48,330 nt of DNA from positions 1 to 48,330 of the forward strand of contig NIVC01004368.1 of NCBI GenBank assembly GCA_002269645.1, given 5' to 3'. The notes beneath the pieces are model-generated. The model saw nothing but the letters and a program-made list of their open reading frames with translations. It made no database searches and was not told the DNA's origin. This stretch comes from Macrostomum lignano. Taxonomy: Eukaryota. Made by a program: the position numbers and the translations under genes. Below are positions 2,344 through 42,460 of the stretch, in pieces. Numbering within the stretch: position 1 is the stretch's first letter; the number at the start of each line of letters is the position of its first letter.

Positions 2344-2431
<88 letters not shown>

Positions 2432-2459
2432 CTAAGACACACAGACAGACAGACAGACC
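2344..2459 (+). repeat. (GACA)n microsatellite, in the likely 3' UTR of the RRM-Periphilin gene
   Basis: About 22 perfect GACA units followed by degenerate units. Confidence 0.97.
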
Positions 2460-2611: not shown

Positions 2612-2996
2612 CTACGGCACCTGGCCGGACTCCAGGTGACGCACGTAGTCGCGCAGCTCCTCCACGCATTGCTGGCCGATCTCGCGAAGCGTCTCCTTCA
2701 GGGCCGACCGGATCCGCGACTCCAGCTGCGGGTCCTTGCTGATGAGCATCTTCACCACTACGGTGAAGGTGTCGCAGTCCTGCCTGTACGACTCCTCCAG
2801 TTCGGCCTTCTTGGCACGCAGTTTGCCAAGGCTCGACTCCGACAGGCTGCGGGAGCTGCTGGCCGGCGCGCGTCCCGGCGACTTGGAAGCCTCGGCGGCG
2901 TCGGCCGCGGTGCTCGCCTTAGCTAGAGACTCGCGACCACCGACTTCGACGGCGCCGGCGGCAGCGGCGAATCCGGGGGCGACTCCCGCGGCGGGC

Positions 2997-3028
<32 letters not shown>

Positions 3029-3896
3029 AGGAAGCGGGGGAGGCGGCGGCAGGTCGCGAGGGGCGGATGAAGATTTGTCCCTCCTGCCGCTGCCGAGGCT
3101 GCTGTTGCGATCGAGCCGCCTGCTGCCGCTTCTTTTGCTGCTGCGGCTTCTGCTGCCGCGGGCGCTGCTGCCGCTGCTGCTGCGGTGCCTGCGTTTCTTC
3201 TTGCGCTTATTGCGCTTGCGGCGCTCCGACTTCGACGCCGGGCGCGGTCTTGGCGGCGGGGATGGTGGCGGGGGAGTCGGCGACCGAGACCGAGCCATGA
3301 CCGCGACTGGGACGAGCCATGGACCGCGACTGACCGGGACCGGTCAGACACAGACCGGGACCTAGAGCGGGACCTGCTTTGGGATCGGGGCCGGGACGCG
3401 CGGATCTTGAGCGGGACCGGAACGAGATCGCGATCGAACTCGGCGGAATCGGCCGTCAGAAAACTGCTGCTGCTGCTGGCCGTAGCTGTAGGGCGGCCTG
3501 CCCGGTCCGCCGCCCCGTCGGCCGCCGCGGTTGTAGGCGCGGCCTGGCGCCGACGCCACGAATCCGCTGCAGCCGGTCGCGCAGCTCCGGATCGGGCACG
3601 TGCCGCACCCGCGCCGCGCCTTCAGCATGTCGCGGAACCACACGATGCTGACCCGGTTGCCCAGCAGGCTGTTGTCGTGGTACTTCTCCAGCATCTCCTT
3701 GGCGACCTCGTGGGTCTCGAAGCGCAGAGCCACGCTGACAAACGCCTTGTTGAGGTGAAGAAGTCGATGGAGCAGCTGTGCCCCTTGTCAACAAAGAACC
3801 GGCGCACATCGTCGGCCCGGACTTTGGAGGACAGGCCGCGGATGTAAATGCAGTGGCGCGAGGGCGTCACCAGGGCATGTGGTCGCTGCCGCTCAT
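2612..3896 (-). CDS. PPHLN1-like: Intronless RRM + RS/Pro-rich + Periphilin C-terminal domain protein; several single-base frameshifts between ~3300 and ~3880 in this sequence
   Basis: The RRM is split across frames: HCIYIRGLSSKVRADDVRRFFVDKGHSCSIDFF / HLNKAFVSVALRFETHEVAKEMLEKYHDNSLLGNRVSIVWFRD. It is followed by RS repeats and poly-Pro. The C-terminus YRQDCDTFTVVVKMLISKDPQLESRIRSALKETLREIGQQCVEELRDYV closely matches the human periphilin-1 C-terminus as I recall it (YRQDCETFGMVVKMLIEKDPSLEKSIQFALRQNLHEIGERCVEELKHFI). ATG at 3896, preceded by an acceptor-like TTCCAG. Confidence 0.85.
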
Positions 3897-3943
3897 TGGC
3901 GCTCCTCGCTGCTGGAATGTTTTGTAGCCTTGATTGAAGCTAT

Positions 3944-4530
3944 GGGGCGATTCCAGATGTTCAGGGGCGATTCCGGATGTTCAGGGGCGATTCCAGATGT
4001 TCAGGGGCGATTCCGGATGTTCAGGGGCGATTCCAGATATTCAGGGGCGATTCCAGATATTCAGGGAGGGGGTTCTAGATATTCAGGGGCGATTCCAGAT
4101 GTTCAGGGAGGGGGTTCTAGATATTCAGGGGCGATTCCAGATGTTCAGGGAGGGGGTTCTAGATATTCAGGGGCGATTCCAGATGTTCAGGGAGGGGGGT
4201 TCTAGATATTCAGGGGCGATTCCAGATGTTCAGGGGGGATTCTGGATGCTTCGGGGCCGATTCTAGATATTCAGTGGCGATTCCAGATGTTCAGGGGCAA
4301 TTCTGTATATTCAAGGGCGATTCTAGATGTTCAGGGGAGATTCTAGATATTCAAAGGCGATTCCAGATGTTTAGGGGCGATTCTAGATATTCAAGGGCGA
4401 TTCCAGATGTTCAGGGACGATTCTAGATGTTTTGGGGCGATTCTGTATGTTTTGTGGCGATTCTAGATATTCAGAGGTGATTCTAGATGTTTTGGGGCTA
4501 TTCCAGATATTTAAGGGGAGATTCTAGATG
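3944..4530 (+). repeat. 20-bp minisatellite (GGGGCGATTCCAGATGTTCA), ~28 copies degenerating rightwards
   Basis: Visible tandem array, with GGAGGGGG-insert variant units. Confidence 0.95.
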
Positions 4531-4837
4531 TTATAAGTTATGCTTGGGGCTATTTAAGACAATTATGGATATTCCAAAGTTATTTTGTAACATTTAGAGC
4601 CAAGCAACAAATTGTCTTTGTTAAACGCCCTCTACGCTGCCAGAGTCAACAAAAATAAGCTGTTGTCTAATAATCGGTAAAACCGCGGCTTGATAAAAGA
4701 CAAACTACGAGTAAGAAGTATATTTAAGGAAACAGCGCATCCTCGGTTGAGAACGAGCTCCAGATGAGGCTCTCAACAGGTGAGTCTCTGATATAACAAA
4801 AAGATATCTGTGGCACTATGAGCGATAAGGGTTGCTT

Positions 4838-5136
4838 GGATGTTGGTGTGGATTGTGGGGATCTGGGTGTGGGATTGTGGGGATGTGGGTGTGGTATTGT
4901 GGGATGTGGGTGTGGGATTGTAGGGTGGGATTTTAGGGATGTGGGTGTGGTATTGTGTGGATGTGGGATTGTGGGGGTGTGGGTGTGGTATTGTGGGGAT
5001 GTGGGTGTGGGATAGTGGGGTGTGGTATTGTGGGGGTGTGGGTGTGGGATTGTGGGGGTGTGGGTGTGCTATTGTGGGGACTTGGGGATGTGGGATTGTG
5101 GGATGTGGGTGTGGGTGTGTGGGATGTGTGTGTGGG
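4838..5136 (+). repeat. GT-rich minisatellite (GTGGGATTGTGGGGATGTGGGT-like)
   Basis: Degenerate tandem units with many GGG tracts. Confidence 0.9.
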
Positions 5137-5490
5137 ATCCGGTAACTTCTGAAGCAAAAACTTAATCAGAAAAGAGACTAAAAAAGAACAATAAAAAATG
5201 AAAAATATTTAAAAGTAAGATCCAGTCTGACTATACATTTAGTTTTTTGTGCATACAAAGCTGAAGCTCAGAACCAAGCCAAGTGTTTAGCATATTCTAT
5301 GCGGTACAATGTAAAAACTTGCAAGCCTTCCGATAAGGCAAATCGATAAGAACAAACAGGCGGGTTTAGAAAAAAATTAAGGGTAATTCGGTAAAAAAGG
5401 CCTCGAATTCTAAGTAAAACGAAAAAAATTTGTATAAAATCTCAAGCAAGGCGCTCATTTATAAAAAATGGTTTGGTGGCCTCAAGTGAC

Positions 5491-5870
5491 AAGATGAAGG
5501 GAGGTGTCAGTGAAGGCGGGGAGATGAAGGGAGGTGTCAGTGAAGGCGGGGAGATGAAGGGAGGTGTCAGTGAAGGCGGGGAGATGAAGGGAGGTGTCAG
5601 TGAAGGCGGGAGATGAAGGGAGGTGTCAGTGAAGGCGGGGAGATGAAGGGAGGTGTCAGTGAAGGCGGGGAGATGAAGGGAGGTGTCAGTGAAGGCGGGG
5701 AGATGAAGGGAGGCGTCACTGAAGGCGGTGAGATAAAGGGAGGTGTCAGTGAAGACGGGGAGATGAAGGGAGGTGTCAGTGAAGGCGGGAAGATGAATGG
5801 AGGTGCCAGTGAAGGCGGGAAGATGAATGGAGGTGTCAGTGAAGGCGGGGAGATGAAGGGAGAGATGAAC
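5491..5870 (+). repeat. 30-bp minisatellite (GAGATGAAGGGAGGTGTCAGTGAAGGCGGG), ~12 copies, ~200 bp downstream of the NHE stop codon
   Basis: Near-perfect tandem array. Confidence 0.96.
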
Positions 5871-6064
5871 TCAGCAAAGTGGCAGTTTACCAAGCAAAAC
5901 AAAAAATACAAAGATAGAAAATTTGGCTTAAAACTATTAAGATCGAAGCGAAAAGCCGCTCAGAAGGGAGTGAAAGCATCACAAAAATCACAGCCTTGTT
6001 TTATATCGAGAGATTCCGTATAAAAACCCATAAAAAAATCAAACTGTCTGACTCTGTGAGTCTG

Positions 6065-6292
6065 TCACACAATGTGGCCATCGTACAGGTCGATGGAAAC
6101 TGAGCTCGGCACCGCGGCGACAGCCATAAAAGTCGGACTCGACGGTGTTTCCAAGCCGCTGAAGGCCGCGTTGCTAAGGCCGCTGTTGTCATGGTTGGCG
6201 TTGCTAAGGCCGGACGATGCTTCGCCCGGGGCAGACCCGATGGGGCGCTCGTCATCCATTGAATTGGAGAACAGGTCGCGGTGCACCGAGGC
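6065..6292 (-). CDS. SLC9A6-like: NHE terminal exon (ASVHRDLF...YDGHIV*)
   Basis: Acceptor CAATTCAG, in phase 0 with the preceding exon; ends in a stop codon. Sequence is poorly conserved, so the call rests on splice signals. Confidence 0.65.
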   Translation of the reverse strand, partial: ASVHRDLFSNSMDDERPIGSAPGEASSGLSNANHDNSGLSNAAFSGLETPSSPTFMAVAAVPSSVSIDLYDGHIV

Positions 6293-9200
6293 CTGAATTG
6301 GCAGTTCGGATGGGGTGAACAGCAACCAATTTCCCAAACTTGCACCATCTAGCTGAGATCTTGCCCCACACTAGGCACCTCCCTGAGCCCCATAGCAACA
6401 AGCATAACACGAACCCGTGTCAGCTGCTCATCTGTGGTCAGCAGCCGGGCCAGCGGCAGGCAGACAGGCAGGCAGGTCTCAGTCAGCAGCGGCCGGGCGT
6501 GGGTGAGCAGAGGCTTCAGAAATCTGCAGAGCGTTGGTTGAAAATTAATTTTAGCAAAGCGCTGAAGTTGGAACGTCAAAGTGGACAGCGCGATTCCAAA
6601 TTACAGAGAGGCGTTTTGAAGGGAAGCTGCAGAGACTGTCGGTTCCAGCCCGTCTGGAAGTGCGGCTTCCAGTTTAGATTTTATGATTCTGGAGGGTGTG
6701 GGTTCCAGCGGTAACCTTGCTCCGTTTCGGGGAATGTGCTTTTCAGAGGGTGTGGGTTCCGGAGGGTGTGGGTTCCGGAGGGTGTGGGTTCCGGAGGGTG
6801 TGGGTTCCGAAAGGTAGTGGGTCCTAAATGGTGGTGTGGGTTCCGGAGGATGTGGGTTTCGGAGGGTGTGGGTTCCGGAGGGTGTGGGTTTCGGAGGGTG
6901 TGGGTTCCGGAGGGTGTGGGTTTCGGAGGGTGTGGGTTTTAAATGATGGGTCTCGGAGGGTCTGGATTCCGAATGTTGTGGGTCTCGGAGGGTCTGGGTT
7001 CCGAATGTAGTGGGTCTCGGAGGGTCTGGGTTCCGAATTTAGTGGGTCTCGGAGGGTCTGGGTTCCGAATGTAGTGGGTCTCGGAGGGTCTGGGTTCCGA
7101 ATTTAGTGGGTCTCGGAGGGTCTGGGTTCCGAATGTAGTGGGTCTCGGAGGGTCTGGGTTCCGAATGTAGTGGGTCTCGGAGGGTCTGGGTTCCGAATGT
7201 AGTAGTGGTGTGGGTTCCGAAAAGTAGTGGGTTTTAAATGGCGTGGGTTTCGTAGGGTAGGGTGTGGGGTTCGGAGGGTGTGGGTTTCGGAGGGTGTAGG
7301 TTCCGGAGATAGTGGGTTTTAAATGGTGGGGGTTCTAAATAGTGTGGGTTCTGGAGGGTGTGGGTTCTGGAGGGTGTGGGTTCTGGAGGGTGTGGGTTCT
7401 GGAGGGTGTAGGTTCCGGAGACAGTGGGTTTTAAATGGCGGGGGTTCTAAACAGTGTGGGTTACGGAGTGCGTGGGTTCCGGAGGGTGAGGCTTGTCAAG
7501 AATTTATCACCACATCGAGCTTCACCAGTAATAGCCCTAATCCCGCACAAGCAAACATCGGACACTGCTCTTACCGAATGTCCAACAGGTGCCAGAGCCT
7601 CGCCAGCCGTCCCTCATATTTGTGATGAGCGCCGCGGCGGCACAGACTGCCGCTCACCGCCTGTTCTTCGCCGACTTCGGCGGCGTCAAAGTCGTCTGGG
7701 GCGTCGGCGGCGGCTTCGACGCCACCTGGCGAATTCTGCGGGAATTTTCAACGACTGATGTGATTTCGAATGTGAATCGTTAGAAATAGCTGGACCCTTC
7801 TGGGTGTGCCAGCAGAATTCAAATTAGTTCATTAGTTAAAAACCATCGGTTAGTGAGCTGCTGACCATAAGGGGGCAGAGCAGCTGACCCTGGAGCCACG
7901 ACCCCAGGTTTAATTCCGTGGCTTTTAACAGTAGAAAGACCACGCTGTTTTTCCCCATGGGGAATGTATTACAAATACACACAACCAAATTTTTCACCAT
8001 AGCTCGCAAACCGAATAACCGATTTTCGTAAAAGTCCACCATTTGGATTAAATTCCCCCCCCTTTCCAACGAATTAACTTTCAAAGTCATCCGACGTCAG
8101 CATCGTCAAGATATTCAACGATTCTTGTCGAAGACACTGGTGGAAAGGACAACCAACACTACACTGTATAAACCTTTATGGTGAATCCATATTGGCTCAA
8201 TAATCTGGGTCCATCTGTCGGAGAGGCCTTTCTTCTCAGCATCCCAGGAACTAGGGTCCCCTTCATCACCGTCTGGAGCATCGGCGGCGACCGTCGGGAC
8301 CTTCAACAAAAGCACCCGATCGGCATCGCAGAGACGGCTGCGTTCCCGAAACTGAAATGGAAGAATCCTCTTCTGCATGCAGCATTCAGTCAGTAGACAT
8401 AATCGGTGAATGAAATGGACGATGGCGACCCTCTAGGTTGACCTGTAGACATACAAGCGACCTTCGGGACCTTCAACGGAGTGCCACAACGCGGCCCCGA
8501 CGAACTGGCACCCCCAACATCGTGAATTTTCTGTCAAGGCACCAAACCAGGCATGTCTGCATATTATACATTGGTCCTGCAGCATGTTCAGCATTCAGCT
8601 GTCCGGACGACCTTCGGGACCTTCAACAGAGTGCCACCACGCGGCCCCGACAAACTGGCACCCCCAACATCGTGATTTTTCTGTCAAGGCACCAAACCAG
8701 GCATGTCTGCATATTATACATTGGTCCTGCACCATGTTCAGCATTCAGCTCTGTCTGGACGACAGAGGCACCAAACCAGGCATGTCTGCATATTATACAG
8801 GAGTCAGCCGAATGGGCAGGATTGCATCTAAAGGTAGCGGGAGGGAGCCCGCAGTCCTGCAATTATGGTTAAATTGTTATTATTATTATTTATATTACTC
8901 TGCTAAACGTGAAGACTTTAACACTTGGGCTACATGTAGGAGTAATGCAGGTGAACAATCAGGCAGTTAATTACTAATGAGGCATTGTTTACCCTGCTCG
9001 ACAAGAGCCAATCGGGTGCGGGCACTGGCGGTAGCAATGGAAAGCAGAAAGAATGCAAAGCTTTAACAGTTATAATAAAAAAGCAACCAAAAAATTGCGG
9101 GTTATTGAGAACTAGTTACACTAATGCGGTGCACTGTTCATGAATGAAAGCTAACTAAAACTACCTGTTGAACCAGGCAGTAGCTGTCCGAGCTGACCGC

Positions 9201-12200
9201 ATCGCCGCGCTAAAAGATAAAGCAATTACAGGAGATTCAGATTCCCTACTTGCTGGATCTAGAGGCGTCTCTAGGAGGTTCAGATTCCCTACTTGCTGGA
9301 TCTAGAGGCGTCTCCAAGGAGATTCAGATTCCCTACTTGCTGGATCTAGAGGCGTCTCTAGGAGGTTCAGATTCCCTACTTGCTGGATCTAGAGGCGTCT
9401 CTAGGAGGTTCAGATTCCCTACTTGCTGGATCTAGAGGCGTCTCTAGGAGGTTCAGATTCCCTACTTGCTGGATCTAGAGGCGTCTCCAAGGAGGTTCAG
9501 ATTCCCTACTTGCTGGATCTAGAGGCGTCTCCAAGGAGATTCAGATTCCCTACTTGCTGGATCTAGAGGCGTCTCCAAGGAGGTTCAGATTCCCTACTTG
9601 CTGGATCTAGAGGCGTCTCTAGGAGGTTCAGATTCCCTACTTGCTGGATCTAGAGGCGTCTCCAAGGAGATTCAGATTCCCTACTTGCTGGATCTAGAGG
9701 CGTCTCTAGGAGGTTCAGATTCCCTACTTGCTGGATCTAGAGGCGTCTCCAAGGAGATTCAGATTCCCTACTTGCTGGATCTAGAGGCGTCTCTAGGAGG
9801 TTCAGATTCCCTACTTGCTGGATCTAGAGGCGTCTCTAGGAGGTTCAGATTCCCTACTTGCTGGATCTAGAGGCGTCTCTAGGAGGTTCAGATTCCCTAC
9901 TTGCTGGATCTAGAGGCGTCTCCAAGGAGGTTCAGATTCCCTACTTGCTGGATCTAGAGGCGTCTCCAAGGAGGTTCAGATTCCCTACTTGCTGGATCTA
10001 GAGGCGTCTCTAGGAGGTTCAGATTCCCTACTTGCTGGATCTAGAGGCGTCTCTAGGAGGTTCAGATTCCCTACTTGCTGGATCTAGAGGCGTCTCCAAG
10101 GAGGTTCAGATTCCCTACTTGCTGGATCTAGAGGCGTCTCCAAGGAGGTTCAGATTCCCTACTTGCTGGATCTAGAGGCGTCTCCAAGGAGGTTCAGATT
10201 CCCTACTTGCTGGATCTAGAGGCGTCTCTAGGAGGTTCAGATTCCCTACTTGCTGGATCTAGAGGCGTCTCCAAGGAGGTTCAGATTCCCTACTTGCTGG
10301 ATCTAGAGGCGTCTCCAAGGAGGTTCAGATTCCCTACTTGCTGGATCTAGAGGCGTCTCTAGGAGGTTCAGATTCCCTACTTGCTGGATCTAGAGGCGTC
10401 TCTAGGAGGTTCAGATTCCCTACTTGCTGGATCTAGAGGCGTCTCCAAGGAGGTTCAGATTCCCTACTTGCTGGATCTAGAGGCGTCTCTAGGAGGTTCA
10501 GATTCCCTACTTGCTGGATCTAGAGGCGTCTCCAAGGAGGTTCAGATTCCCTACTTGCTGGATCTAGAGGCGTCTCTAGGAGGTTCAGATTCCCTACTTG
10601 CTGGATCCAGAGGCGTCTCCGAGGAGGTTTTCAAGTCCCAGATAAGTCCCATGTGTATGTTGCTGGCACTCTGGACGACACAAATCAGATTGTAAACTGC
10701 ATGCGCTGTGTGAATTTAATAACGGTAAAAGCCATCAGTCAGCATAAATAATCAAAGCAAACTTACAGAAAGCCGCGTCAGCACCCGCTTGCTCTTTGTC
10801 GGATTCTCCTTCGACACCGACTCTGAAGAAAACAGGTTGATGGGATAAATTAGGAATGGATTCTGCCCAGCATTGGGGGTACAGCATTGGGGGTTGGCCC
10901 TCGCGGCTGTGAATCGCAAGGCAACCCCAAGGCCAAAGCTTCGTGCACGAAAGCCCCAAATGGGGGCCGTCCTGGCCGAGGGTCACACGCGTTTAACGCT
11001 GAGCTCCCCCTATATTGGAGGTTGGCAAACTCCGGCCCGTGGAGCCTGTCTATCCGGCCCTTTTAAGATTTGTGGTGCTTCTCCGCTTCCTTTTCCTTCC
11101 TCTTCTCTCTCCTTTCGCTTCCTTCTCATTCCTCTTCTCTCTCCTTTTGCTTCCTTCACTTCCTCTTCTCTCTCCTTTCGCTTCCTTCTCATTCCTCTTC
11201 TCTCTCCTTTCGCTTCCTTCTCCTTCCTCTTCTCTCTCCTTTCGCTTCCTTCTTCCTCTTCTCTCTCCTTTCGCTTCCTTCTTCTTCTTCTCTCCCCTCT
11301 TCACTCTCCTCTCTCCTACCTCTTTTCTGCCAACTCCTCTTGCCCCCTGTCCCTTCTCTTCTATCTTCTATCTTTTCTTTCATCGCATCCTTCGCCTGTC
11401 TTCTCTTATCTACTTACTGCTTTCCACTCTCACCTGGCCCCTAGACATGAGCTGGATTATTTATCTGGTCCTTGAGCTAAAAACTGCAGATAAAAAGACA
11501 GCAGGGGAGGGGGGCACCAACTGAATCCTCAGCCAGTGCAGCATCTGCGTGGCCATGCCGCCGCCCAGCAGCACAGTGGCTATCACGATGACAAGCGTGG
11601 TGGAGAACAGCATCTTCCTCGTGTCCGTGGACGTATTTCTTATCGCCAAAGCGAATGCGATGGCACCGCGCAGGCCGGAGAACATGAGCATGTGCATCTT
11701 GTTGGCGCCGATCTTGCAGCGCCGGCCCAGGTTAAGCAGGCAGCACAGCGGATAGATATTGAGCGCCCGGCCAAGCAGAATGGCGGCAAAAGCGGTCGCG
11801 ACAAAGCCCAGATCCCATACGTGGGATCTGTAGGTGAAAGTGGTCACCCTGATGTACAAGAATGTGAAATTCTCCGCCAGGAAGTTCAACAGCTCAAAGA
11901 AGGTTTTGGTTGAACGCTTGGTCTGCTGGGACAGGTTGTTGTAGGTGTAGTGCGCCTGGCAGATGCCGCAGAACAGCACGGCCACGATGCCGGTGCTCTG
12001 GGCCGCCTCTGCCGCCAGGAAGGTGCTGTAGCTCATGAGGATGAACAGGGCGCACTCCAGCAGCGGGTGCTCCCGGACCAGGGTGTACTTGGTGATCAGG
12101 GCCGTCAGGCAGCCCATGGCGCTGCCGATGCCCAGGGCGCCGAAGAACACGCCGAGGAAGCTCAGCACTGAAGTGACGATGGCGCCGCCTTCGAAGGTGG

Positions 12201-15200
12201 CGGAGCCGGCAGCCAAGCTGTCGTACTTTTCAACGGATTGCGCCAGCACTATGGCGACCGCGTCGTTAAGGACGCTTTCGCCGAATACTAAGGCGTAGAG
12301 GTCAACGTCTACGTTTAGGTCGTTGAAGATGGCGAGAACCGTGACTGCGGAGTGTTGTGGCGGGAGTTAGGGAGCGGTGAAGTGAAACTAAGCAATCTCA
12401 GAGGTGAGATCTAGGACTGCGGCGCAGTGAGACTAAGCAATATCAGGTGTGAGATCTAGGACTGCGGCACAATGAGACTAAAGCAATCTCAGAGGTGAGA
12501 TCTAGGATTGCGGCACTGTGAGATTAAGCAATCTCAGAGGTGAGATCTAGGACTGCGGCGCAGTGAGACTAAGCAATATCAGGTGTGAGATCTAGGACTG
12601 CGGCACAATGAGACTAAAGCAATCTCAGGGGTGAGATCTAGGACTGCAGCACAGTGAGACTAAGCAATCTCAGAGGTGAGATCTAGGACTGCGGCACAGT
12701 GAGACTAAGCAATCTCAGGTGTGAGATCTAGGACTGCGGCACTGTGAGACTAAGCAATCTCAGAGGTGAGATCTAGGACTGCGGCACTGTGAGACTAAGC
12801 AATCTCAGGGGTGAGATCTAGGACTGCGGCACTGTGAGACTAAGCAATCTCAGGGGTGAGATCTAGGACTGCGGCGCAGTGAGACTAAGCGAGGTCAGAT
12901 ACTGCAATGGCAAGGCGCTCATGCCTGACTAACCGGGATCCGTAGCGGAGATGATGGCGCCAAACAGCAGGCAGTCGGTAAATAAAATCGAGCCACTCAA
13001 CGACCTGCTCAGCCGGGTCAGGCCATAGACAACGGAGCTGCGGATGCGTACGGCTGATGTAATGAGTGCCTAAGCTAGCAAAAGAAAACAATTAACAGAG
13101 CATGTTACTAATGTTTGGCGTTACTCACCCCACGACAGCACAGGAGATAGTGGTGCCAACAAATGCCAGCGTCAGAATTGCCCCAATGTTGCTGAAGAAA
13201 TGCTTCTGCAACCAAAGGAAACAGAGGAATCAGGGAAAATTACATGATCTTTCATCAGTGCTTTTGATGACGTCAGATTTAGCGTCTCTAGGAGTTTCAG
13301 ATTCCCTACTTGCTGGATCTAGAGGCCAGTCTCCAAGGAGGTTCAGATTCCCTACTGGTTGGATCTAGAGGCGTCTCTAGGAGTTTCAGATTCCCTACTT
13401 GCTGGATCTAGAGGCCAGTCTCCAAGGAGGTTCAGATTCCCTACTGGTTGGATCTAGAGGCGTCTCTAGGAGTTTCAGATTCCCTACTTGCTGGATCTAG
13501 AGGCCAGTCTCCAAGGAGGTTCAGATTCCCTACTGGTTGGATCTAGAGGCGTCTCTAGGAGTTTCAGATTCCCTACTTGCTGGATCTAGAGGCCAGTCTC
13601 CAAGGAGGTTCAGATTCGTCATCAAGTCAATAATCTGCCCACTTATAAAAGCCGAGGCAGCCCGCACACACCCGCTTCATGCTGTAACCGGCGCAGAAGA
13701 TGATGGGAGGCAGGATGACGTGAAAAAACACCTCAGAATTGAAGGTGGCCTTCTCGCTAAGAACTGGCGCATTCACGTTGCGGTTTAATAACCGCCTGGC
13801 GTAATCGTACTCGTAGACGCGGGTTCGATTCCCCGAGCTGCCGAGCTCCAGCATGTTCAGCAGCACCTGTTTCAAGGGGGTGGAGAAATCGATTAACCAC
13901 CTGGCCACAGCTACAGGCTGAAGCTGCACAAGGGAAAACCAGAATCAGATCAGATCCCGAGGCCTCACCTTTTCAGGCGGAAGTGGATCAGCAGTGGTGA
14001 CTGCAGGTGCTCCAGTCACATTATTACTAAGTGATCCAGTAGGGTTGCCAAGCAGAGTGAAGGTGCGAACACTGATTTCCCTGGGATTCGAGCTGTACCG
14101 AATGATGGCGCCAACAACCAGGCCTGGGTGAATAATTAAATAGGGGCCGATAGTAAACAACCTTAGCCTAATTATCTGTGGCAATATTATTTCACAACTG
14201 CTTAACTGGGAATTTTTTTATAGGATTGGATAACATTTTGAAACTTATTCCAATATCACATGTACAATTGCCAGCCAACCTGGCTAATGAAGACAGTGTA
14301 AATTGTGGCAAACCAAGGGTAAGTTGCAAAATAGGAAATGTTTTATTCTTTGGATATTGTTGCCAATTATCAAATTAAGAACTTTTTTCTTTGTATGAGC
14401 TCGTAAATTTGAGCATGGCATAAAAAGTCATTATAAAATGACATTAATCATTATCAGGTGCAAATTCAATATGGCTATTGGTGCTAACTATTTCTTAATG
14501 TAGCAACATTCTACCTCCTTCAGTCTGAGGCCATATTGATTAGCTGCACTATCTCTCTATACGAGTATAACTCTAAGATGGCTTATTTAATTACCTTGTG
14601 GCTTGCTCTGCCCATTGTGCATAAAATATAGTGAAAATAGAATTTTTCAATTCTTAACCAACCTTTTGCATTGTACCTACTTCAAAGTTTGACAAAATTT
14701 CCACTTTTAACTTTTTAAATAGATTTGCTTTTTCTACAGTTGAAAAACAACTTTTAATTCAACTATTAAGTTTGTACTATTCGATTTGCTTAGCAATGCA
14801 TGCTGCACTTGGGTCCTTCTTTTTGTTTTATTTTGTGTACTTTTTTATTCCCTTAAATATTCATGCTTGCACTTGCAAATTTTTGTATGCTTTTAACCAC
14901 AAATCTAATTTATTCAATATTTATATAGGCCTACCTGCTTTTCCATATGTAAATTATCAATAAAAAGGTTTATCTAATAAGTAAATATGACTTAAATTGT
15001 CTATTTGGCTAGACAAGGCCTAACATTAAGCAGAATATAATATTATATTTATTACAAAACAAGTTTGATAATAGCCATAGCCAAAACAATAAAAATCTTT
15101 TGTAGCCCACTTTCTATAGATATAAAAGCTCACTTTCTATAGATATTGCTAAATTTTTTGTATTTTTTGATTATTTTAATAGGAGCTTGTGATTTATCAG

Positions 15201-18200
15201 TTGGGTTAGCAAAATGACTAAGCAATAAGGAGTCTATATATGAAATTAGTAAAGTTCAATATATGGAAAAAACCTTGAACCTATTAAACCACTTTGATTT
15301 AAAAAGATTTTATCAATGCTAAATGACTGATGATAAAATATGTATATTATTTTAGTACAAATAGAAGGTCCAAACTAAGAAATGTCTATCACAAGGTTCA
15401 ATGAGCCCTAAGAAGTTCCATGTGGAATTGTTTGAAATAAAGGTCTATAAGACTAAGATAATAATAATAAAATTAATAATAATAATAATAATTAGAAGAA
15501 GAATTGGACTAATAAGATAATAATAGTCAATGAAGTTAATTTGCAAAGTGACCATTTTTTTAATTTGCCTAATTTCATTGTTGGCACAGTGACTTAATAG
15601 TGCTATAAGTCTCTTGATTGGTTAGTTGATAATAATTAATAAAAAAATATAACTACAATCTACCTAGTTGATAAAATGAAAATTGACAAAATAATTAATA
15701 TCTAATATATATTGCAAAATAAGCCAACAAGGTTGTATCTAACTTGCATTTTCAAATGTTTTTATGATACTTTATATAGTTTCATATTCAGAAAATATAC
15801 AGCATATAAAAAGTACATAAATCATGTTTCTCAAATTAATTTTAGTATATATGGTCAAGAATTGCAATCTCTAGAGCCTTATGGACAAGCATACAAACCT
15901 TAGAGATTTAGTATATTTAGACTAGGTCTAGGCAGATGCATACAAATTTGGTGACAAACAAATTCAATGATAGAAATTTAATAGGAGGGGCCTATAGACA
16001 CATTTTGCAACAGCAAATTCAGCAACAATCTAAGCAAATTTAGCTTTAAAGTTTGATTTATTGATTGAAACCAAGGTTTTAAAGCCATCTGTCAGACCAA
16101 CCCCTATCCCCTTTGTTAATAGTTGTTGAGAAAATAATAAGAGTGAACACACTACATTTAAATTAGATATTAAATTGAATAAGATAGGGAGCTAGTAATG
16201 GGGCACAAGGCCCAAACTGATATATTTATATGACATTAACTTTGGGGGTGCAGATAAGACAAGGGGGGTAGAGTGCCCGACTAAGGAAAGAGGCAAAACA
16301 GAAAGCCAATCAAAATGCAGCAAAGGAGAGAGAGAGATAAGAATAACAAGATTGAGCTAGACAGAGAAAGAGAGAGAAAACAATAAACAGAGACACATAA
16401 AGAAGAACTAAAGAAATGACTAGGAAAGTTGTGACAATAGTATAATACATTATCTAAACTTAAGTATAAGGTATGTATGAGCCCACTTCTATTGGAGAAA
16501 ATGTAAATCAGAATGGAAGTACTGTCAATTGATACTACTACTATACATTTATGTATGTATACTGTGTATAAGGCCTATATTTAGATTTATGTGGCAATTA
16601 GAGCTGCCTTAAGACTCTAGCCACAAATAAACACAGAATAAACAAACATTTCTAGGAAATTAAAGCATATTTAAAAAGTATAAAATAAATAATGGATAAA
16701 ACAAACTTAATTGTAAAGAAAAACGAATATATGTAGACATTGTCATATACCATTGTACCAAAAAAATTAATAAGTCCATAGTCCAGATCATGGGAGACAT
16801 ATGCCAGAATGAAATTTCATGTTTTTTTTTCAATTTTATGCTGACTAAAAATCAAAAAAATTTTTACACCAAAACAAAAATTGCTTATATGCCATTTTTA
16901 ACAAATATATATTTTTAGGAATTCAAAAACTTTACTAAACTTAAACAGCTGTCTTTTTGCTAAAAATTGATATTCTTTGTTTTAATTTTGACTTTCTTGT
17001 GATTGCATTAATATTTTTTATTTTAGTTTCCAAATATTTTAGAGCTTTCAACATTGTTTGATATTTAATTACACAATTATATTAGCCTTGAACTTGGCTA
17101 TTTTTTGTATGCCGACTGTGTACACTTCATGTTGAACCTAAAAATTTTATATGCCAAGTCCCTATTGGAATAAGTGGTATTTTCGCGGACGGCGTCCGGC
17201 GCACTTTTTCTTTTTCCTCATAGTCATGGCGCATGGCGCGCTACGCGCGCCATGCGCCATGACGCACAGCAGCTCACAGGTAAGATGCAAGGAGGACATC
17301 ACGCGCTACATACAGCGCTGCTGAACAAGGATGAGAAGCATGCACAGGAGAAAGTCAGCAGCACGGTGGAAATTCAGCAAACTGTAAGTAAAACTTGTTT
17401 TTCTAATTTCTATAACTTTGATAATATTGCTATGGGCTATAGTATAGCATATCTCCTATCATATGTATTGATTGCTGTGTCATCTAGAATATGCATGCAA
17501 GTTAATCGTAAAATTGGAAATTGTAGTTGAAAGATCGCAGCAGAAATGTTCTTTATTGCCTCATAAACATTATAACATAGTGCCAAATGCTAATTGCTCT
17601 TAATGTTCTCTTATAACGCAGTTGCAAGAAATAAAAAAGTAAACTAAATTCTATTAAAAGTCTCAACAAATTTTCTGCTTTGTTTAATTATCTTTTTGAT
17701 TGGTTGCGCGTACATTTATTTATGCTGACATTTAAATGTGAAAATATTCTTCGAAACACCATGCTAAATAGTTATCAGATTTGATAACCCGACCCGAGCC
17801 AAAGTGCTACAACTACTACTGAAAAAGTGTGTGGATAAGGCAAAGACAATTTTGTTTGTTCGTGAACTCTGTGTTGTTCATCACGGAGTTTCTTCATTTT
17901 GTATTAACCGATTAGCCAAATTGAAGTAAAGGGTTTCAGTGTTCGTAATCATTTTAAGTACTCACTGATGCAATTGCCACACTATTTACATTATTTATTT
18001 TTCTTTGAATAGACCAACAATGTAACTTTGTAAGTCAAAAGACGAGTAGACTAAGAATTAAGAAATAGATACAACTACAACAGAAGGGGGCAGAAGTACA
18101 GTACAGAACAGAGTGCAGTAAAACACAAGTGCGGTAAAACACACAACTTTCTCTCAATCTCTTTAAATCTCTCAAAAACGAGTGATGCATCATCAGAATG

Positions 18201-21200
18201 AACATGATAGAGACTGGAGTCATGCACAATATCACCTAAACCTAGAGTGCTATGGCACCCTAGGATTTGAAGATTTGAATGACACATCGTCCATACCACC
18301 TTAGGATTTGAAGATTGTCATGACGCACCGTCCAGGCCACTTTATGATTGCCATGGCGCACTAGATGCACTGTCCACAGTGTCTGAAAACTTATTCCAAT
18401 AGGGTGCCAAGTGTATGCCAAGATTGTCAGTAAGAGCAAAAATATGCCAGAAAATTCTGGCATAAAGGCCATCTTCTGGACCATACATGCCCAACCTTAA
18501 AATTTCACCCATCTGGTACAACTTAGTTTTGTCCAGATTTGCAACTTACCTATATACAACCACACTGAAAGACCAAGGGGGGGGGGTAGCACGCCCCGTG
18601 TATGCTTGTGCTTATTGAAAAATGGAATACCTCATTTCTCTTCCCTTTCTCCTACCCTCACTCACTTTACCAATCAATTTATCATTCACTTATTCACTTA
18701 TGCAGCATTGCAGACTGCAGTACTAAACTGCACTGTAGCCTGCACCCTGTAGGCTACACTCTACATACTGTACTGTATGTCTGGCTTATATATGTACACT
18801 TGTACACTCATATATAGGTGGTGTACATTCTTTGAGTCATTATATACTTCACTTAAAGATGGACCTGCACCTGACTATATAAGGGCTAAGCAATAAGTTT
18901 CTGGATGTGCCCAGATAAAAATAGTTAAAAAGAAAAAACAGTTACATCTTTTCAAAGTACTCTCCAGCAGATTCGATGTAAATTTTCATGCACTCAAACC
19001 ACTTGCTGAAGCAACTGGACCAATCTGAAGCAGGCACCTCTTCCACATGCCGGATGAAGGCCTCCACTGCAGCTTCCGGTGATCCATAGTGGATTCCACA
19101 CATCCTGTGCTTGATTTGTGGAAACACAAAAAAGTTCCAGGGGTCAGGTTGGGGCTGTAGGGTGGATGACTGAGCTCTTGAATGTGCTCTCTGGCCAGGA
19201 ACTCTGCCACCTGTTGAGCCTTATGGGATAGGGCATTGTTGTAATGGAGAAAGATGCCCCAAGCTTGAGTCCTTGCTCTTAGGCAATGCCTGGAGAGAGC
19301 GCTCAGCACTTCTGGCTGGCAAACATTGGTGTACCAGTCACTGGTGACTATGCATTGCTGCACAAGTGGAACTGTGGCCAGATGACCGGTTTTCGCCACA
19401 AAAATGGCCACCATCTGCTTTGCAATGCTGCACTCTCACCAAAGCTTAGATGGTGGGGTGCTGCCAACTAGGCCAACTGATGCTTAGTCTCTGGGTTGAA
19501 ACTATAGATCTAGGACTCGTCACTACTGACGATATCCCAAACTGAGTTTGAGCTGCCTCCATTGAATCTGTTGAGCATGGTGCAGCACCAGGTCACCCAA
19601 GCCTCTTTCTACTCCAAAGTCAGCTTATGAGGCACCCAGTGTGCAAAAATCTTGCTCAGGTTGAGCTGTGAATGCAGGATTGTCCTGATGGATCCTGATG
19701 AGATGCCCACCTCTGCCTCTATCTGGGCCACAGTCACTCGGGCATTATCCTCAACCATGGCCTGGACAGCAGCAACATTATTCTTAGTCATTGCGGAGAC
19801 ACACTGGCCACTGCGCTCCTCATCATCTAGACTCTGCCTGCTGCGTCAAAATTTGGCAAACCAGTCATAAACGGTAGATCTAGAAAGTGCTTCATCCCCA
19901 AAAGCTCCTCGCAATTGCTCAAGACTTTCTTGCTGCCGCAAACCACTTTTAAAATGGTAATAAATCATTGCTCTGAAAGGACTCCTATTGAGTTCCACTG
20001 TGAATTTGATAGATAGAGTGGCTATGCTAGCTTGGTTTGGGTGCTGCACTGGCTATATATGACTAGTGTTTCTGAAACTTTACAAACATTGTACTTATAT
20101 AATGTACTTGACACCTATGGTGTCAGATTTTGTCAGCCACCTTTCAACAATGCACATCCAGAAACTTATTGCTCAGCCCTCGTATACTGAATCCTACATG
20201 TGAATAGGATGAAAAAAGCCATGAAGACTATTCTATCAACCGGTGCCCCCTTTCTGCAGCTGAAGAGCGAAAGCCATTGCTCTTTACAGGATGGAAACTT
20301 GGTCGTGTAACTCCTGGAGAAGTTAATGATTGTTCTGGTATGCATTGGATATTAGATTAAAATTTCCCAGCAATCTTATGTGCAGCCCAGGGATCAGGTG
20401 ATGGTGGCTCATTCTATATAAGATGGACATATTTGGAAAATAGAAAAAAGTCAATATTTTTGCTTGCCATTACCTAATTAGCCTATTTTTTTTACCAAAT
20501 GTTTATATTGTGCAACATATACAATCTAAGAATAAAGGAATGGTAAAATGTTGGATTAGTATGTTATCAATTGGCAAAAAGTCATTTTTTGTAAAAATTT
20601 GGACATTTTTTGAAGCAAAAGACATCATTAAGATTTTGTACCTTTTAAAAACAAATAGAAAGCTTTTGAAGGTTGAAACAAACTATAGATAAAAGTATAG
20701 TACTTGCATCATCAGATAAAAGCATTGGTGACCAAATAATCTATTATATTTTTAATGTATTAGTACCTCAAAGTTACTGAATTGACAGAAAAAAATATGT
20801 TACGACCATAATGTTACGACCATAAGGCTGCCTTTTCTTTTGTATCTTTGTTGCCTTTTGAGTTTATATATTCTAATAAAAGAGTATGATTTCTAAAGAT
20901 GTTCTTAGTCAAATTTTAAAAATGTATTGCAAAATATCAAAAATGAAAAATGTTATAAGACTTTTACCTTTTAGTTTCTATGTAAAAAATCCTGTTGTTA
21001 CGACCATAAGTGTCATTTAAGGTTTAATGGCATCTATACTAATGATGATATCTATATGAAACTCTATAAATATATTCTAGACAAAATAATCTTTCATTTA
21101 AAATATTGGTTTAGTATATTCTATTATTAGATTTCATTTTATAAGTAAAAATAACCTGTCATGTTACGACCATGCTTATATGGAATGAGCCTGGTGCAGC

Positions 21201-24200
21201 TGCAGCACATTCAAGGGAACTAGAAGCACCACCATCTTAATGTTGAACAAACTCACACAGGGAGGGACTGTTAATGGCAGTGCAAATCCAGAAGTTGTGC
21301 TTCTAATAGAGTAGAGATGTTCCGAAATTTCGATTTCGATTTTTCAAAATTCGGATTTTTTTAGAGCAAATTTCGATTTCGAAAAAATTTCGGAAGTCAA
21401 AATTTCGGAAGTGCTTACTTCCGAAATTTTTATCTGATTTTAGTTTTTTTGAACTTTGTTACTGTCTTTTATCGGTGATATTATACAATTTTTACATGTA
21501 AAACTATTTGAATTTGTTAAAACTGTTCCATGCATGTAGGACATGTAACATGGTAGTTTGTACATGTGGAACTGTAAATTTTCGTAAATTTTGTTGCACT
21601 TTAAAGCTGCAAAAGCATCTGCTGATATATTGCATATTTTTCGCATTTTACAGTATATATATGTACATTTACTGTACATGTACATGCATTATCGTTTACA
21701 CGATCTCAGTTATTGCTAGTCATGCAGTGATACATGTACATTTTAACTGTACATTTTATACATGTACAACTCAGTATGCACCCTATACCCCACCACCTAG
21801 ACGGATAAAGGCAGAGAAATTTGTTTTGTCTAACAGGGAAAAGGCGCACTTTGCTACCGTGCTTAATACCGTCTAGTAATGCAATATACCCGCCTTAGTG
21901 TTTCTTTTAAAGGCACTAGTTCAAATAAATTACTTAACACATTTACAGATCATATGTAGTTTTCGCGTCGAAAAAAATTTTTGCATTTAAAAGTGGCAAT
22001 GAGGGATTCTACTTATTTAGTGGCCAAAAATAAACGAACTTCTGCTAAACATACATGTATTTTGTTTTGCATGAGCAGTAAATCGAAAGTAGAAAAGTGA
22101 GTGTTGGTTGTACTAAACTTTGTTTTTCTGAATTACGATTTTGGAAAATTTTGATTTCGATTTTGATTTCGGAAAGTAGCGAATTTTGATTTCGATTTCG
22201 ATTTTGACAGAAAATTTGCTTTCGGAACATCTCTATAATAGAGATCTATCTGTGCAGAATGCAAAAATTAAGATTCATGGTGCAGAATCGCAGATGCAAC
22301 AATCCACACATATTGCTCTTCTCAAATAATTTCAGCTGAAAGAGAAGCTGTTTTTGAAATGAATGAAGAAACTAGACATCTTGGGACAGAATTTTTACAA
22401 TGACGCAATGCTTATGCTGAATCTATTGCTATAGAATCTTGCCTATCAAATGATGCTGATACTGAAGTGCGGATCCAATGACCACATATAGCCATTCATT
22501 TGGACTCAGATTTGGAGACTGCGACTGATGGCCAAAGAAGTGAGAGTCCTCCAAGAAAAGGTTATATAGTTATACAAACAGTTACAAATAGTTACCTAAT
22601 TATATATTTCCAGATACTTGAGAAGAGCAAACCAATAATGTACTTCTATAGATTTAAGCAACTGTCAGTCATAGAAACAAGACAAAGCATGATATGCTAA
22701 AAGATTTATTTACTCAATATAACATTGTAACAATTTTTTGCAAGACTATGGGGCGTTACAACAAATAAAGCATCTATGATGACAGGAAGTCAAGTTTGCT
22801 AAAACCATGGGCAAAAAACAATTTCTTCCAACACCATTGTGCTGCACACAAATTGGAGCCTATATGCCTTTGAAAAGTTGCCATATATAATGCCTAGATA
22901 CACTACTGCAACGCCTAGAGGACAGGCAAAAAATATCCCGATTGCAACTTAGTTCCTCCTGATTGTGGCTTAGTTATTTTGTTTTCTTCTTTTCTCTTTC
23001 TTTTTCTCTCCTGTTTCCCTCTTCTCTTCTCTTTTTTCTTTTCTTTTCTTTCTACTTTTTTTATTTTCTCTTCCTCTTTTTTTCTCCCAATTTTTTATTT
23101 TCCCATTTTCAATTTGCGACTTACCTTGGCCAGAGGCCATTTTACCTATTTGGTTTGGACAGGTGTTGGGCATGTATGTTCTGGACTATGGTAATAAGCT
23201 GCAAATTATATAAAACTCTTGTTGCTAAATTTAATAAGATTGTCACCAAATTTGCTTTTACGCCATGACGCACAGCAGCTCACAGGTAAGATGCAAGGAG
23301 GACATCACGCGCTACATACAGCGCTGCTGAACAAGGATGAGAAGCATGCACAGGAGAAAGTCAGCAGCACGGTGGAAATTCAGCAAACTGTAAGTAAAAC
23401 TTGTTTTTCTAATTTCTATAACTTTGATAATATTGCTATGGGCTATAGTATAGCATATCTCCTATCATATGTATTGATTGCTGTGTCATCTAGAATATGC
23501 ATGCAAGTTAATCGTAAAATTGGAAATTGTAGTTGAAAGATCGCAGCAGAAATGTTCTTTATTGCCTCATAAACATTATAACATAGTGCCAAATGCTAAT
23601 TGCTCTTAATGTTCTCTTATAACGCAGTTGCAAGAAATAAAAAAGTAAACTAAATTCTATTAAAAGTCTCAACAAATTTTCTGCTTTGTTTAATTATCTT
23701 TTTGATTGGTTGCGCGTACATTTATTTATGCTGACATTTAAATGTGAAAATATTCTTCGAAACACCATGCTAAATAGTTATCAGATTTGATAACCCGACC
23801 CGAGCCAAAGTGCTACAACTACTACTGAAAAAGTGTGTGGATAAGGCAAAGACAATTTTGTTTGTTCGTGAACTCTGTGTTGTTCATCACGGAGTTTCTT
23901 CATTTTGTATTAACCGATTAGCCAAATTGAAGTAAAGGGTTTCAGTGTTCGTAATCATTTTAAGTACTCACTGATGCAATTGCCACACTATTTACATTAT
24001 TTATTTTTCTTTGAATAGACCAACAATGTAACTTTGTAAGTCAAAAGACGAGTAGACTAAGAATTAAGAAATAGATACAACTACAACAGAAGGGGGCAGA
24101 AGTACAGTACAGAACAGAGTGCAGTAAAACACAAGTGCGGTAAAACACACAACTTTCTCTCAATCTCTTTAAATCTCTCAAAAACGAGTGATGCATCATC

Positions 24201-39406: not shown

Positions 39407-40857
<1,451 letters not shown>

Positions 40858-42164
40858 GTGACCTGGGAAGTTGGGTCATGTCCCAATACTCAGTGACCTG
40901 GGAAGAGGGGTCATGTCCCAATACTAAGTGACCTGGGAAGAGGGGTTATGTCCCAATACTGAGTGACCTGGGAAGTTGGGTCATGTCCCAATACTCAGTG
41001 ACCTGGGAAGAGGGGTCATGTCCCAATACTAAGTGACCTGGGAAGAGGGGTCATGTCCCAATACTAAGTGACCTGGGAAGAGGGGTTATGTCCCAATACT
41101 GAGTGACCTGGGAAGAGGGGTTATGTCCCAATACTGAGTGACCTGGGAAGTGGGGTCATGTCCCAATACTCAGTGACCTGGGAAGAGGGGCCATGTCCCA
41201 ATACTCAGTGACCTGGGAAGAGGGGCCATGTCCCAATACTCAGTGACCTGGGAAGAGGGGCCATGTCCCAATACTCAGTGACCTGGGAAGAGGGGCCATG
41301 TCCCAATACTCAGTGACCTGGGAAGAGGGGCCATGTCCCAATACTCAGTGACCTGGGAAGAGGGGCCATGTCCCAATACTCAGTGACCTGGGTAGAGGGG
41401 CCATGTCCCAATACTCAGTGACCTGGGAAGAGGCTCTTTACTTTCATTAGATTTCGCTAATTGCAAACAATAAGATGTTTTTAAAGCCAATAACTATTGT
41501 GTAAAAAAATTAATGCATGACATTTTTGCAAATCACGATTGCGCCAAGAGTTTTTAGACAAGCGAATATGAGAAAACCATGAATCAGTAGGGTAAGAGCA
41601 TTTTTTAGTTTTTTTTTCAGCACCAAAGATAACAAAATAGCAAATTCCCTTTTGATTTCGTGTTATAACAAAATATATTTTCTATATTATATTATAGATT
41701 TTCCTTATCGCTTTAAATGCTTGTAAAAGTATACTTGAGTTCATAGGGAAGAGTTTTAATAACTATGCTTTTCCTCTTTGAATTGAGATTTGCTGGTGTT
41801 CTGCTCCGTTTTCATAGCTATATGCGTGGTAGTATTGATTCAGTCACTTCGAGTATTGGGTACTGAGCAGTCCAACCCAGGGGGTACCGATCGTACCGAG
41901 GACTTAAAATGCTTGTTTTCTCCACGGGATTATCACTCTTTGAAGTTGATTTCCTGTCTTCTCTATTGGGAGGAAAATCGTAAATATTGCTTTTAAAGTT
42001 TCAATCCCGTCTACATCCAAGCTTTGCAGTGCAGTTGAGATTTTTTATCATAATTACTCGTCTAATACTCGTCAAAACTTGATAAAAACGAGAGTACCGA
42101 GTACGAAAAACCGAGTATCCCTAGCACCGCGAGTACTCGCCCAGCTCTGGTTGCAATGTCTTTG

Positions 42165-42460
42165 GCTTCAAGGTACTTCGCTACTAGCTACTACTAATAA
42201 TAGCTCAGCTGCAGCTATTGCGTGGCGCATCTGAAGGCTGCGTATGGCTGTTCAGTCCAAGGACTGGGGGGGGGGTCGCCACACACAGCCTCAATTACCC
42301 CAGCTAATACTGGTACCTATTTTACAGCTGGATGAGAACTGAAGCAGTAAAGAGTTAGGTGTCATGCTCAACAACACAAATTGTTCCATTGGGATCGGGA
42401 ATCGAACCCCCGATCTTCAAGTCGTGAGTTAGACGCTCTAACCAGTAGGCTACAACCCCC
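42165..42460 (-). mobile_element. tRNA-derived SINE with a conserved central (CORE/V/Meta-like) domain
   Basis: Minus strand shows A box TAGCCTACTGG and B box GGTTCGATTCC, then TGTTGAGCATGACACCTAAC...CAGTTCTCATCCAGCTGTAAAATAGGTACC. The 3' boundary is approximate. Confidence 0.75.

Follow-up and report, generated by a model that had tools for sequence, protein, structure and literature searches.

A frame-disrupted third paralogue of an RRM-periphilin gene in Macrostomum lignano, probably a decaying segmental duplicate

The stretch of DNA analyzed here (the window) comprises 48,330 nucleotides (nt) of the flatworm Macrostomum lignano (contig NIVC01004368.1 of assembly GCA_002269645.1) and carries, on its minus strand at positions 2612 to 3896, a copy of a gene of the periphilin family. 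We propose that this copy is a third, frame-disrupted paralogue of the Macrostomum gene and that it is probably a decaying segmental duplicate, i.e., a pseudogene, rather than the product of an assembly error. An initial annotation of this DNA had described an RRM, an RS- and proline-rich linker, and a periphilin C-terminal domain fused in a single protein at this place. The location and strand were correct, running from the ATG at 3896-3894 to the TAG at 2614-2612, and all three parts, namely, an RRM-type head, an RGG/RS/Pro-rich linker, and a Periphilin_C tail, are present there. These parts are real, far beyond chance, yet they do not lie in one open reading frame (ORF); reading them takes all three frames, and the single fused protein was not confirmed.

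The best protein matches to the window copy are two M. lignano proteins, P0001 (Mlig022724g1) and P0002 (Mlig019216g2), both annotated as "hypothetical protein." Both show the same three-part architecture, but they differ from the window copy in having open reading frames, with one intron in P0001 and two in P0002. P0001 is 58% identical to the window copy in the head and 58% identical in the tail. At the DNA level, only the tail can be aligned with the intact paralogue (75%), which indicates that the duplication is old.

Three-frame translation of the minus strand gave recognizable protein segments in every frame, in the order MSGSDH (frame f2), ALVTPSRHCIYIRGLSSKVRADDVRRFFVDKGHSCSIDFF (f1), KAFVSVALRFETHEVAKEMLEKYHDNSLLGNRVSIVWFRDMLKAR (f0), RVRHVPDPELRDRLQRIRG (f2), linker, and a final ORF in f0. 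The lesions between these segments (Table 1) were located by DNA alignment with both intact paralogues (alignment A1), by frameshift-aware protein-to-DNA alignment, and by direct reading. After lesion 1, the ATG frame closes at TGA 3869-3867, after 9 codons. Beyond the site of lesion 2, frame f1 runs to TGA 3624-3622. At lesion 3, where P0001 reads GCC CGG CAG CGG GTC CGG, the window reads GCG CGG C-G CGG GTG CGG, and the resulting frame f2 closes at TGA 3458-3456, so that at least one further frame change is required before the linker in f0. Two in-frame f0 stops follow inside the linker (TAG 3364-3362 and TGA 3346-3344). With stops at 3869, 3624, 3458, 3364, and 3346, an ORF able to make the full protein was not found. 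As assembled, the window copy cannot encode an RRM-periphilin protein and could yield at most the product of its 228-residue C-terminal ORF. The few substitutions together with a handful of indels would look like the pattern expected of a recently inactivated copy.

The linker was found as the initial annotation had described it, being rich in RGG, RS, and Pro, with a proline run about 15 long and RS dipeptide runs that are spread across all three frames. A candidate intron lies within it (Table 1). If spliced, which is unproven, this 3307-3417 interval would remove both f0 stops of the RS region; GT/AG pairs are common in this GC-rich repeat region, which weakens the candidate. Splicing as a rescue of the reading frame as a whole was considered and rejected: no intron mends the three breaks in the head, and a search of frame f1 for an ATG found none.

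For the C-terminal part, the evidence is strong. As had been claimed from its resemblance to periphilin-1, it is a periphilin domain, and the profile comparison suggested at that time returned Pfam Periphilin_C (PF25234) with 100.1 bits (E value, 8.7e-29; cut-off, 27) over profile positions 17-82 of 84, corresponding to residues 158-223 of the 228-residue ORF and to window positions 2827-2630. A phmmer search against the PDB matched the human periphilin-1 structure sequence 6swg with an E value of 7.8e-19. Prigozhin et al. (PMC7544229) mutated L326, L333, and I337 (dimer interface) and L356 (TASOR contact) in human periphilin, and the equivalents of these four residues are all identical in the window tail. 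A Leu at the L356-equivalent column was present in 21 of the 45 nonvertebrate family members scored, with a gap in 14 of the 45. The last 85 residues were modeled by AlphaFold as two long helices (residues 11-45 and 49-80; pLDDT, 88.8), which fits the published helical hairpin of periphilin. No match was found when this all-helical model was compared with the PDB by Foldseek, so the fold comparison with periphilin relies on the sequence match to 6swg.

The assignment of the head is less direct. Pfam RRM_1 (PF00076) matched it with 21.0 bits against a cut-off of 20.7, on a hand-repaired translation only, and in the intact paralogue P0001 the profile was not reached at an E value of ≤0.001. The repaired window head nevertheless retains 11 of the 11 invariant columns of the head alignment (A2). 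Residues 1-128 of P0001, modeled by AlphaFold with the head alignment, are predicted to form a beta-alpha-beta-beta-alpha-beta core (E26-33, H38-47, E52-60, E65-72, H75-88, and E96-99) followed by two helices (103-112 and 114-125) that match the conserved region behind the RRM, with a pLDDT of 80. The top 50 matches listed by Foldseek for this model against the PDB were read as RRM-containing entries with a probability of 1.00, and the best among the matches listed was 6ez7 (E value, 2.9e-4; target TM-score, 0.70). We thus regard the head as a real RRM, but one that is weak by sequence; the call depends on the family, in which 44 of 63 members match RRM_1, and on the predicted fold of P0001. 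The N-terminal RRM of the initial annotation therefore holds for the fold and the family, while the window copy itself gives only the marginal match to its repaired translation. Among the residues typical of RNA contacts, the RNP2 aromatic is retained (Y in CIYIRGL). The first RNP1 aromatic position is F or Y in 44 of the 63 family members and S or N in all three Macrostomum paralogues, and the second is Ala in 63 of 63.

The gene order around the copy points to its origin. An Na_H_Exchanger gene sits immediately upstream of P0001 in the Mlig_3_7 assembly, and the window shows the same order and orientation, matching the intact locus (L002). This shared order of exchanger and then periphilin gene argues for duplication of a two-gene segment, not for retroposition. 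We therefore envisage that a segment with the Na+/H+ exchanger and periphilin genes side by side was duplicated and that the duplicate would then have gained at least three small deletions in its RRM-coding part and further frame breaks in the linker.

A further M. lignano entry covers the same place. P0023, a UniRef entry of 566 residues that bears the name "Reverse transcriptase domain-containing protein," is a chimeric gene model that hops between frames and fuses exchanger exons with the head of the periphilin copy; it spans window positions 3496-13003, and pieces of it are 100% identical to the window. At the head of this locus it reads MSGSDHIDPALVTPSRHCIYIRGL. No reverse transcriptase segment was seen in the part of P0023 that maps to the window, and the entry looks like a misnamed annotation artefact. 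No protein matching the C terminus of the window copy was found in a collection of 5.8 billion proteins, and no gene with that product is on record.

That the breaks reflect decay of the gene, rather than error in its assembly, we infer from the assembled sequence, and several observations weigh against it. The complete retention of the invariant head columns and of all tested tail residues fits either a very recent decay or an intact gene. The gene has a G+C content of 69% (versus 59% for the exchanger exon), and errors of assembly might lie behind its indels; polishing can work badly in GC-rich DNA. Two tandem copies elsewhere in the window, at 17.5-29 kb, differ by 7 indels versus 21 substitutions, a rather high share of indels. 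P0023, which comes from a different annotation of this locus or of one nearly identical to it, is free of both 7-nt deletions and contains other frame changes. As for function, the RNP1 aromatic is absent in Macrostomum, leaving RNA binding by this RRM plausible but not assured, and a HUSH-like function of the window gene or of its family would follow from analogy only. The gene could accordingly be intact in the animal, as a functional third RRM-periphilin paralogue whose breaks are assembly or consensus errors in a GC-rich, repeat-flanked stretch. Besides the conserved residues of both domains and the indel-rich tandem copies, such a reading could draw on P0023, which carries the residues missing at both 7-nt deletions, and on the 111-nt GT..AG candidate intron, which could account for two of the linker stops. 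We consider it unlikely, though the most serious of the alternatives, since the 7-nt deletions lie outside homopolymers and are not the usual long-read consensus error, and since P0023 is itself frame-changed at other places. Moreover, at least three independent breaks fall within ∼300 nt of conserved coding sequence, whereas the exchanger exon at a distance of 7.6 kb has none over its 834 nt; that unbroken exon of 278 codons indicates that the breaks are local. The public collections searched also contained no matching protein or gene call.

Alternatively, a shortened gene might be expressed, either from the 228-residue ORF alone (3298-2612) or from an ORF that starts at Met codons near 3694 and crosses the candidate intron. 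Its product, lacking the RRM, could form dimers with the full-length paralogues and either be similar to vertebrate periphilin or serve as a modulator. In favor of this reading, the 228 codons of the ORF are uninterrupted, its Periphilin_C domain is fully conserved, and the vertebrate periphilins recovered are themselves devoid of an RRM-type head. Long ORFs nevertheless arise by chance in DNA of 69% G+C, several overlapping ORFs of 140-220 codons are present here in different frames and on the opposite strand, and the public collection holds no such protein; we judge this explanation improbable. A processed (retrotransposed) pseudogene, intronless and GC-rich and inserted into AT-rich repeat DNA, would agree with the lack of long introns and with the contrast between the gene and the 2-kb stretch just below it (positions 1-2000; 34% G+C). 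The upstream exchanger gene, with the order and orientation of the intact locus, points instead to segmental duplication; the parent-type gene P0001 has only one intron, no poly(A) tract follows the stop codon, and tandem repeats beside the start codon are found at the intact locus as well. We rejected this origin on account of the synteny with the exchanger and the missing poly(A) tract, and any chance left to it is very slight. A decaying segmental duplicate thus remains the reading that we favor.

The surroundings of the gene are rich in tandem repeats, with (GACA)29 just downstream and a 20-nt unit repeated 29 times that begins 48 nt upstream of the ATG. Damage to the promoter by the latter repeat was considered and rejected, as the intact paralogue has one too. 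A 16/32-nt array (6746-7488) recurs in the neighborhood of the intact paralogue (L001 and L002, ∼11.2-12.1 kb).

Outside Macrostomum, the combination of head and tail proved to be widespread. A profile of the head was searched against 1.84 billion representative proteins (clustered at 50% identity), yielding 308 matches with E values of ≤1e-3, of which 76 had E values of ≤1e-10; the weaker matches were ordinary multi-RRM proteins. Among the best 63 members, RRM_1 was matched in 44 and Periphilin_C in 37. The cooccurrence survey that had been suggested for RRM and Periphilin_C thus gives at least 37 protein clusters with both. The named members cover seven animal phyla and include trematodes (Opisthorchis and Clonorchis), cestodes (Hymenolepis and Dibothriocephalus), annelids (Dimorphilus and Owenia), the nematomorph Gordionus, nematodes (Thelazia, Bursaphelenchus, Globodera, Steinernema, Auanema, and Caenorhabditis elegans, with Y57G11C.9 [melo-1]), amphioxus, hemichordates, and a brittle star, the hemichordate and brittle-star proteins having come from the first homologue search. 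The flatworm, hemichordate, brittle-star, and tapeworm heads align well, with the pattern HxLFIRG ... VALRF ... WF[KR]D.

In contrast, the head profile did not match any of the thirteen vertebrate periphilins recovered. From this wide invertebrate spread and the headless vertebrate proteins, the arrangement of RRM, RS region, and Periphilin_C is best read as the ancestral bilaterian form, the head having apparently been lost in the vertebrates sampled. The suggestion of an ancestral architecture in the initial annotation thus gains support from flatworms, annelids, nematodes, a nematomorph, hemichordates, a brittle star, and amphioxus. In the brachiopod Lingula anatina, a Periphilin_C protein (P0007) starts at MWRKDYK, which is where the W[FY][KR]D motif of the family ends the RRM. 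Judging by this start site, some species may make RRM-less isoforms of the same gene.

The RRM-periphilin architecture is already in public databases and is the normal layout in many invertebrates, under UniProt and NCBI names such as "RRM domain-containing protein," "Periphilin-1 C-terminal domain-containing protein," "periphilin-1-like," and "serine/arginine-rich splicing factor 4." The initial annotation had left open whether the architecture was new. It is catalogued, and its C. elegans member even has a gene name, melo-1; what can be said for novelty is that our searches of the full-text literature found no paper on the RRM-periphilin architecture or on the function of invertebrate periphilins. 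A screen published in 2011 took a Brugia homologue for host mimicry of periphilin (PMC3050887), in our view a misreading.

Comparison with known proteins brings out what is shared and what is not. Human periphilin-1 (PPHLN1; 6swg), a subunit of HUSH, has the C-terminal hairpin domain in common with the window copy (33 of 64 residues identical) and likewise has a Ser/Arg-rich disordered region upstream of it (PMC7544229). The window copy differs in its disrupted frame; residues 20-291 of the human protein are predicted to be unstructured (PMC7544229), whereas the invertebrate family begins with a folded RRM-type domain. In human HUSH, the periphilin hairpin dimerizes and binds TASOR (PMC7544229), two copies joining one helical TASOR segment through a leucine-zipper contact (L356). 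TASOR-like proteins (DUF3715-SPOC-DomI) have been reported throughout metazoa, including invertebrates, with no flatworm named in the text (PMC10578480), and the selection of RNA by periphilin is a subject of ongoing work (PMC7544229, PMC11754731). C. elegans Y57G11C.9/melo-1 (UniProt Q9U203; WBGene00013307) has the RRM-type head (profile E value, 1.6e-22) and the periphilin C-terminal domain, and it differs in having an Asn/Gly-rich N-terminal extension and in keeping the aromatic RNP1 residue, as do most family members. A splicing atlas of 2025 lists "melo-1/periphilin 1" as a putative splice factor, central in an inferred splicing network and without an established splicing role (PMC12084653); the literature searched yielded no silencing role for melo-1. 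Classical SR splicing factors also have an N-terminal RRM followed by RS dipeptide runs, and some relatives bear SR-like automatic NCBI names, such as "serine/arginine-rich splicing factor 4 isoform X2" (Lingula) and "SRRM1-like" (amphioxus). SR proteins, however, end in the RS domain and do not have the periphilin hairpin, and the head of RRM-periphilin represents a separate RRM subfamily, with the HxLFIRG ... VALRF ... WF[KR]D pattern and a noncanonical RNP1.

For the intact members of the family, i.e., Mlig022724 (P0001), Mlig019216 (P0002), C. elegans melo-1, and others, we propose a mechanism that is modeled on human HUSH. Their proteins consist of an RRM-fold domain, two short helices, a disordered RGG/RS/Pro-rich linker, and a C-terminal periphilin hairpin. 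Contacts with nascent or processed RNA would be made by the RS/RGG linker and by the RRM together with the helices C-terminal to it, while the hairpin would homodimerize and zip onto a helical partner, as human periphilin does on TASOR. The protein could thereby act as an adaptor through which an RNA signal is passed to a complex acting on chromatin or in RNA processing, its partner being either TASOR-like, for HUSH-like silencing, or an RNA-processing factor, as melo-1 hints. RNA binding, a HUSH-like partner, and a role in silencing may, by the same analogy, be attributed to the family. More tentatively still, RRM-periphilin might have been the original RNA-reading subunit of a prevertebrate HUSH-like complex, in which the RRM and RS region of the ancestral bilaterian protein recognized transcripts and the hairpin docked onto a TASOR-like scaffold, with the RRM later lost in vertebrates, which use a disordered N terminus; we hold this to be possible but doubtful.

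HUSH is mostly portrayed as a defender of vertebrate genomes. In animals other than vertebrates, a folded RRM-type domain normally accompanies the periphilin tail, and this offers a testable lead on ancestral RNA recognition, with a possible link to splicing through C. elegans melo-1. If the proposal is true, the flatworm paralogues and melo-1 would be tractable systems in which to follow how transcript recognition feeds chromatin silencing or splicing. The lead belongs to the family and not to the window locus; for the turnover of paralogues in the duplicated Macrostomum genome, the window copy supplies one data point. UniProt and NCBI records already show the architecture, so that the value here is in drawing attention to it, not in its discovery.

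Table 1. Features of the periphilin-family copy and of its upstream neighbor in the window
Feature	Position	Strand	Remarks
Start codon ATG	3896-3894	minus	Frame f2 (codons starting at 3998-3k); MSGSDH, then lesion 1
Lesion 1, 7-nt deletion relative to both intact paralogues	between 3877 and 3876	minus	A1 columns 35-41; conserved (I)DP codons gone
RRM-type domain coding region	3625..3876	minus	f1 3876-3753 ALVTPSRHCIYIRGLSSKVRADDVRRFFVDKGHSCSIDFF plus f0 3752-3625 KAFVSVALRFETHEVAKEMLEKYHDNSLLGNRVSIVWFRDMLKAR; frameshift-aware alignment to P0001
Lesion 2, 7-nt deletion, beta2-beta3 loop	between 3753 and 3752	minus	f1 to f0; A1 columns 166-172
Lesion 3, 1-nt deletion	between 3613 and 3612	minus	f0 to f2; CAG to C-G
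Conserved post-RRM helix, RVRHVPDPELRDRLQRIRG	3555..3611	minus	f2 only; P0001 RVRADPQLRARVQRAQEG, P0002 RVRNDPNLRRRLEQRG
Low-complexity linker	2828..3554	minus	RGG, poly-Q, RS runs, K/R-rich patch, poly-Pro, Ala/Ser-rich stretch
Candidate 111-nt GT..AG intron, phase 1	3307..3417	minus	Same place as the single intron of P0001 (L001, ∼6454-6866)
Sole long intact ORF of the gene, 228 residues	2612..3298	minus	Frame f0; MARSRSPTPPPP...HLESGQVP plus stop TAG 2614-2612
Periphilin C-terminal domain, helical hairpin	2630..2827	minus	PF25234, 6swg, interface residues, AlphaFold
Stop codon TAG	2614-2612	minus	Ends the 228-residue ORF
Endosomal-type Na+/H+ exchanger gene (NHE6/7/9-like), upstream neighbor	6421..13761	minus	Exchanger, then periphilin copy, as at L002
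Exchanger exons	∼13761-13672, 13208-13098, 13033-12935, 12351-11518, 6528-6421	minus	12351-11518, 278 codons, unbroken; Pfam Na_H_Exchanger, 104 bits

The 278-codon exon of the neighboring exchanger gene is 55 to 65% identical to homologues of other animals. A homologue search with this exon found no near-identical protein in the public collection, the best matches reaching only ∼60% identity, and none of the matches listed gave access to a further copy of the locus. The exchanger introns are filled with 43- to 46-nt satellites (9230-10629, 12381-12890, and 13290-13617).

The remainder of the window contains a tandem duplication of ∼5.5 kb, whose copies at 17495-22959 and 23501-28980 are 99.27% identical, with 21 mismatches and 7 gaps. 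Each copy has an ORF of 142 residues (18986-19414 and 24995-25423) with a weak DDE_3 transposase match of 20 bits, below the cut-off, and these ORFs are probably a mariner/Tc1-type remnant. Two Fibrinogen_C ORFs on the minus strand (42851-43348 and 44296-44853) match successive parts of the profile with 66.5 and 23.4 bits, respectively, and probably belong as two exons to a single fibrinogen-related gene, with a 21-nt satellite (43456-44093) in between. An element of 257 nt at 42202-42458 is 87% identical to part of the first intron of Mlig019216 (L003 and L004, 10401-10651) and is probably a dispersed Macrostomum repeat. Micro- and minisatellites are unusually dense in the window (2344-2458, 3944-4532, 4838-5138, 5492-5862, 6746-7488, 39453-40323, and 40817-41433), and a (TATC)217 array is also present.

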